A DNA stretch of 64,000 bases, from NCBI GenBank assembly GCA_038496445.1, contig JALMLS010000361.1, forward strand, positions 186,001 through 250,000, written 5' to 3'. The stretch comes from Trichosphaerium sp. ATCC 40318 (lineage: Eukaryota; Protista; Tubulinea). Both the position numbers and the translations under genes were made by a program. Below are positions 33,545 through 39,702 of this stretch, one piece after another. Position 1 is the first letter of the stretch; every line of letters begins with the position of its first letter. Below the pieces are notes generated by a model. It was not told the origin of the DNA. It searched no databases and worked only from the letters and a program-made list of their open reading frames with translations.

Positions 33545-34485
33545 CTACGATTCCCCCTTATCATCAGTTACGCCTTGTCCTTGATCCATTATTTCATCTT
33601 TTAATGCTAGTCCAAGTGCATACCCTGGATCAATAGCTAACGCTTTATCACACCAAAGTATAGCCTCTTCTTTATCTCCGTGATCATTATAAACCTGTGC
33701 TTTGCGATAATAGCCTATCGTTCTATCTGGCAGTACTTGAATCAATTTATCACAGGCACTCAGTCTAATATCTTTACCCTTATTGGTACGACCTAGTAGA
33801 CCCACAATATTTGCCAACGGCTTCCAATCTCTTGGTCTGAGCTTATAAGCTTTTTTCCAACATTCAACAGCCTTATCGGTCTTGTTTTGTAAATCGCATA
33901 CAATACCACAGTTGTTATAGGCACCATGATGTTGCTTCAGCTCTAGTGTTTTATCATAGCATTCTTCGGCGGCTGCCCATTGTTTTAGTTTCTTATATAT
34001 ATTCCCTTTGTTATAATGGGCACTTGCTATACCCCTACCACGTGTTGTAGTAATTATATCATCATAAATTTGAATTGCTTCTTGTGTTTTATCTACGTGT
34101 AGGTTAGCGGAAATCATACCTTTTCATTTGAACAAAATGTAGAATCACGTGCGTACTTTTTTTCCCAAGACACAAAGCAACTTTAAAGTTGGCGGTAGTA
34201 CTACCTAGATGCAGGGAACGCCTATAGCAAACCTCGGCGCGATCATAGTCATTGTCCTGTGTATAAAATTGATCTCCCTAAAAAGATGGTCACAGGACTT
34301 ACAGTACACAGGACATCGATCACGCACTGCTTGTGCCCATGCATTAGCTTCAAAGAAGGTACCAAGAGCCTGTACTGGGTCCAAACAAATGGCAATTCTT
34401 CGATTTTTGTATTTAGTAAATCAAGCGATTTTATCTTCTCGATAGTGTAGCCCATAGCTTCGGTAAGTGTTGATGCAAAATCCAT
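33545..34485 (-). CDS. TPR-repeat protein (5' exon structure uncertain)
   Basis: TPR units AHYNKGNIY, AYNNCGIV, GYYRKAQVY; upstream exon GDQFYTQDNDYDRAEVCYRRSL splices in frame to the 33545-34117 ORF. Confidence 0.75.
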
Positions 34486-34774
34486 GTTATGTAAACCAAA
34501 AGTAATTGTAAACCTAAAAATATAAGCAATGGACTCGCACATGCGTAGGTATGTTATTTTGATAGGTTTTGGATTGTTTGTTTATTGTTCAGTACAAAAT
34601 GTTACATTAACGTTGTAGAGTGGTCTAATCGATTTTGACGTACTTGTATTTATAACTAAAAGGTGTGATGGTGTAAAGACGACAAATCAGTTCAGTCAGT
34701 TAAGTGTTTTACTTTGAATTTGCCGCGTTTTTGATTAAGTGCGGTTATTTAAATCCTACCACCATCACATCTCC

Positions 34775-35240
34775 ATGACCTTGCACGCTAACATACCACA
34801 GACCTTATTTCAGATCTTTGTAGACGAAAAAGAAAATATAGACCCACAAACCGGTCTATTACCAATAAAAAGCACAGCAAAGGTATCTCCCAAACGCTCC
34901 ACACGCAAGGCGCTTCGCGATATTACGAATAAATTTCTTCATTCTGAGGACGTACGCAATTGTTTTAACCTGGCTTTTCTAATGCCTAAATTAGAAGGAG
35001 GACGAGATAAACGCAAGCGAGGAGCCAGCTCGCAATAGTGACGAGAAACCTAAACCCGTCGCACTGCCATCAAAGGACAAACCACAGAAGAAAGAACAAA
35101 CTGACACCAAAATTGAAGAACCAAAGAAAGCCAAGAAGCCAATGAAAAAACGGCTACGCCGCAAGCAACTCAAAACAGGCCCACGACGCGTTATTATGCC
35201 ATCAGCCGCCAAGATGGCTGTGTTACGCTCATGCCGATAA
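34775..35240 (+). CDS. 140-aa disordered protein with ABBA, KEN and D-box motifs and an LRSCR tail; putative APC/C regulator
   Basis: FQIFVD-EKEN; RKALRDITN; intron 34952-34994; ends VLRSCR*. Confidence 0.7.
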
Positions 35241-35434
35241 CTTTGTTGAGGCACAAAATGTACCATAGTGTAAAGATGTAAATTACTGTTAAATGAAAGT
35301 ATTTTTGTAGATAGACATCCAGAACAAACTTTTCGCGTCACCTGTCACTCATTGTTTACTTTGCCTCGTTGGCATCGGAGTTATCAAATTAGTCTTTGGT
35401 AGTCAACCAATTGCAACAGTCATTGATTGCAAAC

Positions 35435-37104
35435 ATGGATTTCAAAGCAGCTCTCGGTGGAGGAAAGGAAGAGAAAGAACCAGCAAAGGAACAAAAAAAA
35501 GCTCCGGTTAAGAGACGTCCTCCTAACGCAAACGACTTCCGACGTTACGCTTGCCCTCCAAATGGTACTATACTGCGGTCAATCAACATATTTACGTAAA
35601 TAAAGGTAATCCTGACAATTTTTGCGTCTGGTACGATGAGCACCTTCGTGAGAAGTACGGTTCACCAGATCAGAAAGCATGGACGTGGAAAGAGCGCAAA
35701 CAATACTTTTGGAACTTTTTCACTCAGGTAGTGCTACTCGGTACAATAAACGCTTACTCTTACCACTAGCGTATTAACGGCAAATACCCATACCTTAAAG
35801 TCCCTACCGTTTACACTGCTGACGCCAACATGGACATCAACAAATTGATGAAAGACAGGAAGCAATCTGTAGAGCACATTGTACCAAAAGATATCTTGTG
35901 CAAGGAAATGCAAAAAAGAGTACACAAAAAATAATTCTATCAAAAAGGGGCCTAACTTTTTTGTAGTACCCGCAATTCCTCAAAAAACACCCAAATCTCT
36001 TTGCTGGTGCAACTACTAACCTCTTTAACATGGCTCCTTCCCATCAAACCGTTAACAAGATGCGCGAGTAAGTCAACCGAAAACAAGCGTTTTAAGCTAA
36101 TCTCATCTACTAGGTGTTACCCATTCGATCTTGAAGGTGATACCGTAAGACATAAGCCTCTACGTTTCAAGGGAGCAGGTTCTTTCAATGACTCTGGACT
36201 TGATGACCAACACGAGTGGATTGTACCTGACCGCAGTCGGTACGTACTAGTCTGCTACTCTTTGTATACTTTGCTTACAAACTCAGTGGTGACATTGCTC
36301 GTGCTATGCTTTACGTTTCAATCGTATACCGTCTCAACAACCTGTACCCTAACGAGGTTGCTACACTAAAGAAGTGGGCTGAAAATGGTAAGCGCTATTC
36401 AAATAGTGTATCAATTGCTTACATAGTACTTAGATCCTCCAAACAACTGGGAGAAGGGTTACAACAAATGGGTTAGCAGCTTGCCATTCTGCAAAGGTAC
36501 GGACTGTCAATGTTTTTACGAGGTAAAATGATTGACGTTGTTTATAGGATACAACAACCCTTTTATTGTCAACCAAAAGTTGTGGCTTGTAGACAGCGTT
36601 TTGGATGCTGTTATCAACAAGGACGAAGATGCTTTGGATGAAGCCGTTGGTGAAATGTGCTACTGCAAGGGACCTCTTCGTGTTGTTGCTATCTTACCTG
36701 ACCCAAGAGGTCGCGATGAAGGTGCTGAGCAGGTACGAACAAAAGTTGTAGAGTTGTATTTTCTTATTATTTTGTAGATTACCTTAAAAGCTACTGAAAA
36801 GGTAACTGGACGTTGGAGAATAACTGGACCATACGGAAAGCATCAAGAGTTGAAAGAAATACCATCTTCTGCAAAGTCTTTTACTGTTACTCTTACTGAA
36901 GGACCACAACTCCCTAACAGAGGTGGAAAGAGCAGCAAGTTCTTTTTGGAAAAGTACGCACTCGAATCCCTGTTTTCTTCGTTTCGTTTGTTGTACTCAC
37001 TAAGTTTTTGTAGTTTTGATGAGAAATCCGGTAAATGGTACTCTAAGGTAAAGGCAGTATACCCAAAAGCTGAAGGCGGCAAATGGATTAAATTCTTGGA
37101 CTAA
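35435..37104 (+). CDS. Endonuclease I (His-Me finger) fused to a lamin-tail-like domain
   Basis: Spliced SVEHIVPK, NLFNMAPSHQTVNKMR, EWIVPDRSRGDIARAMLY, KWAENDPPNNWE, GYNNPFI; C-terminal LRVVAILPDPRGRDEGAEQITL...QLPNRGG. Confidence 0.85.
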
Positions 37105-38682: not shown

Positions 38683-39702
38683 ATGTGTTCTTTGCTGGAT
38701 CTACCTTGTGAACTTCAACAATACATTTGCACTTTCAATGCTGAGACTTTCACCAAGTACCATACACTATCAAAGAGAGCAGCAACCAATACACACTTTG
38801 ACGAAGGATTACAAACAAAAAAAGGAAAATGGATATCATGGTACAAAAGCGGTAAAGTTTTTCGTCATGTTCATAAGAACGGACCATCTGCAACTTGGTA
38901 TGAGAATGGACGCCTCAGGTCACAATTCACGATGATTAACTGGAAACTAAATGGCGTACAAAAAGAGTGGTATACGAATGGACAACTTAAAGCACAAGGC
39001 GCATGGGTTGATGATGTGAGTGAGGGAGAATATAAAAGATGGTACGAAAATGGACAACTTATGGAATGTGGTACATGTGTTCATGGCAAACTAAATGGCA
39101 AACTCAGATCGTGGTATAAAAATGGAAAAATTAAATTGCAAAGTATGTGGCTTGATGATAAAAAAACAGGAGAAGAAACCAAGTGGTATCAAAACGGTCA
39201 AGTTGAGGTAAAAACCACGTGGGTTGATAACAAGAAAAATGGCGAATTCAAGGCGTGGTATGAGACTGGAGAACTCTTGCTAGAAGCAATGATGGATTAT
39301 GGTAAGCAAACAGGATGTCAGAACGAGTGGTATAAAAATGGACAGCTAAGTACACAGAGCATGTGGATTGATGGTAAACAAAATGGAGAAACTAAGAAAT
39401 GGTATGAAACTGGTGAAATTCAGCTTATTGCCTTTATGGTAGATGGAAAACAAAATGGTGAACAAAAAGAGTGGTATAAAAACGGACAACTTAAAGCACA
39501 AAGTATGTGGGTTGATTATGTGTGTAATGGAGAATACAAAACTTGGTATGAAAATGGACAACTTATGGAACATGGTACATGTGTTGATGGTAAACTACAT
39601 GGTGAATGCAAAACGTGGTATCAAAATGGAAAGCTCAAGGAAAGGAGTATGTGGGTCAATGATATTAAAAGTGAACAGAAGTGTTTGAAAATGGAGAAAT
39701 AA
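38683..39702 (+). CDS. Intronless MORN-variant repeat protein with F-box-like N-terminus
   Basis: 339-aa ORF; LLDLPCELQQYI then about 11 repeats of WYxNGQL...G. Confidence 0.9.
   Translation: MCSLLDLPCELQQYICTFNAETFTKYHTLSKRAATNTHFDEGLQTKKGKWISWYKSGKVFRHVHKNGPSATWYENGRLRSQFTMINWKLNGVQKEWYTNGQLKAQGAWVDDVSEGEYKRWYENGQLMECGTCVHGKLNGKLRSWYKNGKIKLQSMWLDDKKTGEETKWYQNGQVEVKTTWVDNKKNGEFKAWYETGELLLEAMMDYGKQTGCQNEWYKNGQLSTQSMWIDGKQNGETKKWYETGEIQLIAFMVDGKQNGEQKEWYKNGQLKAQSMWVDYVCNGEYKTWYENGQLMEHGTCVDGKLHGECKTWYQNGKLKERSMWVNDIKSEQKCLKMEK

Follow-up and report, generated by a model that had tools for sequence, protein, structure and literature searches.

The locus and its gene

The window, which is the whole 64-kb stretch of DNA that was analysed, is eukaryotic with a G+C content of about 38%, and the genes near the locus contain short introns. 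At the locus lies a small, two-exon gene on the plus strand. It is flanked by a minus-strand gene apparently starting near 34486 and by a plus-strand gene with its ATG at 35436. The gene and its upstream region are composed of the following elements:

34713-34726 (+): TTTGAA (CHR-like) directly abutting TTTGCCGC (E2F consensus TTTSSCGC), in the promoter shared with the divergent neighbour; its end lies 49 nt 5' of ATG 34775
34775-34951 (+): exon 1, 59 codons, containing the putative APC/C recognition cassette
34952-34994 (+): intron of 43 nt, GT..AG (GTACGC...TTAG), with the spliced junction present in a contig of run X3
34995-35240 (+): exon 2, 81 codons (34995-35237) followed by the TAA stop codon (35238-35240), encoding an acidic patch and then a Lys/Arg-rich tail

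Translation is assigned to the ATG at 34775, which is the first in-frame ATG 3' of an in-frame TAA at 34736. Once spliced, the exons encode 59 and 81 residues, and this agrees with the length of 140 amino acids given in the first-pass annotation of this DNA. Three public sequencing runs from one study (X1, X2 and X3) contain contigs that cover 34995-35276, that is, exon 2 and the 3' UTR. One contig of run X3, 161 nt long, aligns to 34995-35133, and the 15 extra letters in front of it, CTTCATTCTGAGGAC, are identical to the final 15 nt of exon 1. Since the alignment begins exactly at 34995, directly after these letters, the spliced form exists in this run. The library kind of the three runs is not on record and therefore, the contigs attest the presence and the splicing of the sequence and not its level of expression.

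The contigs of X1-X3 differ from the window at two sites only: a synonymous G>A at 35087 (CAG>CAA) and a 2-nt deletion at 35252, which is past the stop codon. These differences indicate that the runs sampled another strain or allele of this organism. In addition, their direction is the one expected of a coding gene, although as a tiny sample they do no more than suggest this. The 140-residue product is that of a real, transcribed and spliced gene, and it is basic and without a stable fold.

Several other features of the locus were noted. The divergent neighbour (33545-34486, minus strand) has a last exon of 190 amino acids that appears TPR-like by eye, and for which no homologue was found at E <= 1e-5 in a word-index search. 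On the antisense strand, overlapping exon 2, there is a 116-amino-acid open reading frame (34991-35341, minus strand), which is without any supporting sign and is taken as a by-product of sense-strand composition. Further downstream, a stop-free open reading frame of 339 amino acids (38683-39702, plus strand) contains MORN_2/YwqK-type repeats (PF07661). Of 5.8 billion proteins, the closest share no more than 44% identity with it and come for the most part from bacteria or metagenomes; its exact product has no record in the protein collection, and it is possibly a gene of bacterial origin inside the amoeba genome.

The CHR-like/E2F pair is a possible, weak candidate for a cell-cycle promoter element. 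The chance of one E2F match inside the intergenic region of ~290 bp was estimated, post-hoc, at ~0.02. Enrichment of the element across the window was considered as evidence and rejected, as five E2F consensus matches were found in the 64 kb and 4.83 were expected.

APC/C-binding motifs in exon 1

Exon 1 contains three classes of short motif, each of which is known to bind the coactivators of the APC/C, together with a site for CDK. They are arranged as follows:

34808-34825 (+): FQIFVD, residues 12-17, a strict fit to the ABBA consensus
34829-34846 (+): KENIDP, residues 19-24, a KEN box with a proline downstream, preceded by the acidic residues D17 and E18
34886-34897 (+): SPKR, residues 38-41, a full CDK consensus site between the KEN box and the D-box
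34904-34930 (+): RKALRDITN, residues 44-52, a D-box of the form RxxLx[D/E][hydrophobic]xN

These are the motifs that the first-pass annotation had named and a motif scan located all four in exon 1. The ABBA consensus is Fx[ILV][FHY]x[DE] (PMC5179498), and a proline shortly downstream is a common context of KEN boxes (PMC5717348). The D-box agrees with the consensus RxxLx[D/E][hydrophobic]xN[N/S] (PMC5717348) at nine positions out of ten, with the Asn at P9 kept and a sole departure at position 10, which is Lys. The spacing between the motifs is uneven: FQIFVD is separated from the KEN box by a single residue (E18, between D17 and K19), and the KEN box from the D-box by 22 residues.

To say how readily such a set arises, the residues of exon 1 were shuffled. 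The statistics that follow are post-hoc and concern a single protein. ABBA, KEN and D-box motifs occurred jointly in 5 of 100,000 shuffles (5e-5), while KENxxP alone was present in 0.0011 of them and RxxLxx[LIVM]xN alone in 0.0032. When the window was scanned in all six frames for a KEN box and a D-box at most 60 residues apart, the pair in exon 1 was the only one found.

These values bear directly on the view that the motifs are coincidental, and that the gene encodes a small, basic nuclear or nucleic-acid-binding protein with no tie to the APC/C. Short motifs are frequent in disordered, charged sequence, exon 2 resembles a generic Lys-rich tail with an NLS, the E2F-like site is at chance frequency in the window, and the protein is an orphan for which the word index, phmmer and a metagenome scan gave no relatives. 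Yet the joint frequency in the shuffles is very low, and the extended forms KENxxP and RxxLxxIxN are rarer still. Furthermore, both the order of the motifs and their N-terminal placement are typical of APC/C clients, and no second KEN/D-box pair of this spacing exists in the 64 kb. The exon 1 set is thus unlikely to be due to chance, and a protein that has nothing to do with the APC/C is improbable. Instead, a link between the gene product and the APC/C is well supported because the motifs are of high quality, stand in the typical order and are rare.

Exon 2 and the predicted fold

The second exon has a very different character, and its recognisable features are the following:

35016-35033 (+): SEEPAR, residues 67-72, a match to the separase site motif (S/D/E)xExxR in which Arg is at P1
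35064-35072 (+): LPS, residues 83-85, 11 residues after R72 (compare LPE of human securin)
35124-35189 (+): basic cluster, residues 103-124 (KKAKKPMKKRLRRKQLKTGPRR), NLS-like, with a function suggested by its sequence
35205-35237 (+): C-terminal helix predicted by AF2 (residues 130-138, exon-2 residues 71-79) and the final LRSCR; mean pLDDT 92 over exon-2 residues 71-80

Exon 2 is strongly hydrophilic (GRAVY -1.49), has 25 Lys and Arg among its 81 residues (17 Lys, 8 Arg), and contains no aromatic residues. With the six lysines of exon 1, the lysines of the protein number 23. Single-sequence AF2, which like all of the searches below was run exon by exon, produced no globular fold, the pTM values of exons 1 and 2 being 0.33 and 0.21, respectively. 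In exon 1 it placed two helices with low confidence, and in exon 2 everything was coil except for the one confident helix at protein residues 130-138. Given these models and the composition of exon 2, it is fair to call the protein disordered, as had been done earlier; the basic NLS-like patch and the LRSCR terminus described at the same time are likewise present.

Searches for relatives

The first-pass annotation had predicted that sequence searches would miss the relatives of this protein, and this was borne out, as none were found by Pfam, PDB, word-index, phmmer or metagenome searches. With Pfam, neither exon matched a family at E values up to 10. Among PDB sequences there were chance-level matches only, to Prp19/"Core" for exon 1 and to Vma22 for exon 2, with no securin among them. 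The word-index protein search with exon 1 returned zero candidates, its own protein included; here, the query was the unspliced open reading frame 34775-35035 with scoring limited to residues 1-59. A metagenome contig scan gave no relatives. In the ESM Atlas, a search by features reached at best 0.86-0.89, to unnamed plant hypotheticals that lie under the lead threshold of 0.9, and a search limited to named clusters gave no match. The route to related genomes through synteny, using the TPR-like or the MORN_2 neighbour, gave no result either.

When exon 1 was compared exhaustively with 1.84 billion representatives by phmmer, a single hit was returned, P0001, with E = 2.7e-13. This protein of 995 amino acids was rejected as a relative, as it has the appearance of a DNA tandem repeat read in multiple frames, and the score comes from eight weak, repeated matches to residues 2-25. 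The case demonstrates that repeats can fake a match to a short query. The two-exon gene itself is missing from both protein collections searched, and it seems that this genome and its close relatives are absent from them.

Other identities were also considered and set aside. A PIP-box has the consensus Qxx[ILM]xx[FY][FY], and by eye QTLFQIFV does not fit at positions 4 and 8, so that this reading was rejected. Sororin, shugoshin and PCLAF were rejected as well, since there is no Pfam match, coiled coil, or acidic/aromatic C-terminal motif.

Substrate or inhibitor

The explanation that accounts best for the motifs is that the product is a substrate of the APC/C that is degraded in the cell cycle, with its first 52 residues forming a complete APC/C recognition cassette. 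We put the probability of this reading at about 0.55. It has against it that no orthologue was found in any search run and that motifs this short may turn up by chance. True substrates, among them cyclin A, Clb5 and securin, carry ABBA, KEN and D-box motifs just as typically (PMC4195823; PMC2173548).

Such a substrate would work in the following way. The KEN box and the D-box 22 residues further on would together engage one Cdc20/Cdh1 propeller along with Apc10, with the D-box, which is of the cyclin-B type, binding to the coactivator/Apc10 co-receptor. Ubiquitin would be accepted by the 23 lysines, six of them in exon 1 and 17 in exon 2. Phosphorylation of S38 by CDK, between the two degrons, would tune the timing of destruction; in yeast, securin and Dbf4 are destroyed later owing to Cdk1 sites near their KEN and D boxes (PMC4195823). 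As FQIFVD abuts the KEN box, it cannot fill its own receptor alongside KEN on the same coactivator. Instead, it may be an alternative or early docking site for Cdc20, as in cyclin A/Clb5, or merely context for the KEN box. In genuine substrates, namely cyclin A and Clb5, ABBA motifs speed early destruction (PMC4195823).

The first-pass annotation had proposed a different role, namely that of an APC/C pseudosubstrate inhibitor. Here, as in Acm1/Mes1, several degron-type motifs would clamp Cdc20/Cdh1 and block the access of substrates, while the inhibitor itself would be degraded poorly or late. The presence of all three classes of coactivator-binding motif in the Acm1 order of ABBA, KEN and D-box agrees with this proposal, as do the small size of the protein and the lack of a globular fold. 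The 22-residue linker from KEN to D-box is also Acm1-like in length, and in the structure of Acm1 with Cdh1 the corresponding linker is reportedly about as long.

An obstacle lies at the other end of the cassette. The ABBA receptor is situated between blades 2 and 3 of the coactivator and the KEN receptor is on its top face (Di Fiore et al. 2016, PMC5179498). When the linker between the ABBA and KEN motifs of BubR1 was cut by 12 residues, function was abolished, and a neutral linker restored it (PMC5179498). A spacing of one residue rules out simultaneous binding of both motifs to one propeller. Since the receptors are on different faces and the linker is only one residue long, it is implausible that the protein holds one coactivator at three points as Acm1 does. 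ABBA and KEN could in principle bind to two coactivator molecules, as has been proposed for BubR1 (PMC5179498).

Additional features speak against inhibition. The D-box is of the full substrate type, including the Asn at P9, and the protein has 23 potential acceptor lysines. LRSCR had been put forward as a further argument, and it fits none of the defined tails. IR/MR tails have I-R or M-R as the final two residues and the tail of Emi1/Ube2S is LRRL (PMC5717348), whereas this protein ends in C-R, which is neither [ILM]R nor LRRL, so that an ending of the Nek2A/OSD1/UVI4 type is absent. There is one Cys in the whole protein and no Pfam domain, and so a zinc-binding region of the Emi1 type is absent also. 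Finally, exhaustive phmmer, which is able to catch detectable kin among the known inhibitors, gave no true relative.

What stands of the inhibitor proposal is therefore the link to the APC/C, carried by motifs that are well formed, rare and in the typical order; what falls is the three-motif grip combined with a terminal tail, as the ABBA-KEN gap is one residue and LRSCR fits no defined tail. An Acm1-like inhibitor is ranked below a substrate and is unlikely. Slightly less likely again is an inhibitor that arose independently in the amoeba and is unrelated to Acm1, Mes1, Emi1 and OSD1, in which the ABBA-KEN fusion would engage two coactivators or switch between receptors while the D-box blocks the substrate site. 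Sequence does not allow a substrate to be told from an inhibitor, because a strong, multi-degron substrate also inhibits competitively.

With its near-ideal degrons, the gene is a compact candidate for the timing of anaphase or mitotic exit in this amoeba. The fused ABBA-KEN arrangement lends itself naturally to the question of how degrons lying close together are read. Should the motifs lack conservation in relatives, the protein would be merely another orphan, disordered protein.

Securin-like features

The most specific form of the substrate reading is that the protein is securin proper, the inhibitor of separase. In this arrangement the degrons would set the time of destruction, and separase would accommodate the acidic patch and LPS in its active site and exosite. 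All that securins of different clades have in common is a Glu-containing patch and the KEN and D boxes at the N-terminus (PMC6690013), and the layout of KEN, D-box and Glu patch seen here fits this clade-independent profile of Cromer et al. 2019. The order of KEN and then D-box is the same in the human protein, where they are at residues 9-11 and 61-68, respectively (PMC2173548). The layout also fits part of the set of KEN, D-box, LPE and SIS that is used for motif-based calling of securins (bioRxiv 10.1101/2024.01.07.573240).

Two stretches come into question as separase sites. The first is SEEPAR, which fits the separase site motif (S/D/E)xExxR (PMC10317155) and is followed by LPS 11 residues on; in human securin, the LPE docking motif is 12 residues after the P1 position, F118 (PMC6858450). 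A motif of the SEEPAR type alone was present by chance in 0.14 of exon 2 shuffles, and [SDE]xExxR with LP 7-17 residues later in 0.008 of them. The second is DKEDEI (residues 59-64), which spans the exon junction from D59 to I64 and fits (S/D/E)xExx-hydrophobic; being rich in acidic residues, this stretch yields matches of that kind readily.

Set against these similarities are several departures. Neither exon matched PF04856 at E values up to 10. Securins have a large hydrophobic residue at P1, and Arg at this position marks a cleavable substrate (PMC10317155); the best active-site motif here carries Arg. Use of R72 would make the protein a substrate or competitor of separase and not a classic pseudosubstrate. 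In addition, the third residue of LPS is Ser and not Glu. The LPE motif of human securin is followed by a hydrophobic stretch (PMC10317155), whereas the C-terminal half of this protein is strongly basic and free of aromatic residues. At 140 residues, it is also short. Among specific identities securin proper leads, yet it is tentative and on balance doubtful.

Securins and regulators of the APC/C evolve fast, and so they are known from few lineages. A survey in 2011 found separase in Amoebozoa and no securin (PMC3195147). Since then, securin candidates have been named on the basis of motifs only and in a single preprint, of 2025, which gives one for each of Vermamoeba, Acanthamoeba, Mastigamoeba, Planoprotostelium and Physarum and none for Dictyostelium, Polysphondylium, Arcella and Entamoeba (bioRxiv 10.1101/2024.01.07.573240). 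As motif-based candidates are already contained in that preprint, an amoebozoan securin candidate is not new in kind.

Comparison with known systems

Emi1/Emi2 and the plant proteins OSD1/UVI4 are D-box-bearing regulators of the APC/C with a functional C-terminal tail, and such a tail had been claimed for the amoeba protein too. Unlike them, it has no F-box, no zinc-binding region and no LRRL or MR ending. Acm1, the pseudosubstrate inhibitor of Cdh1 in budding yeast, is a small, disordered protein with ABBA, KEN and D-box in the same order (PMC5717348). Here, the difference is the one-residue gap between ABBA and KEN in the amoeba protein, with which the three-point binding of Acm1 to Cdh1 cannot be copied; exhaustive phmmer with exon 1 found no sequence relation between the two.

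The N-terminal degron regions of cyclin A and Clb5 also combine an ABBA motif with a D-box, and there the combination drives early, APC/C-Cdc20-dependent destruction of a real substrate. In contrast to these cyclins, the amoeba protein has no cyclin box. Its gene stops at 35240, and 35436 is the separate start codon of the gene that follows.

Securin (PTTG1/Pds1/Cut2/plant PATRONUS; PF04856) differs from the amoeba protein in that the latter has Arg at the putative P1, LPS in place of LPE, a basic C-terminal half without aromatic residues, no profile match, and 140 residues as compared to ~190-370. Nevertheless, both are small and without a stable fold, and both have a KEN box near the N-terminus that is followed by a D-box. 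A CDK site is positioned beside the degrons, and after it come an acidic Glu patch and, about as far on as in securin, an LP motif. Even the residues in front of the KEN box may have a counterpart, as the N-terminus of human securin contains a hydrophobic I-Y-V-D run directly before KEN..P.
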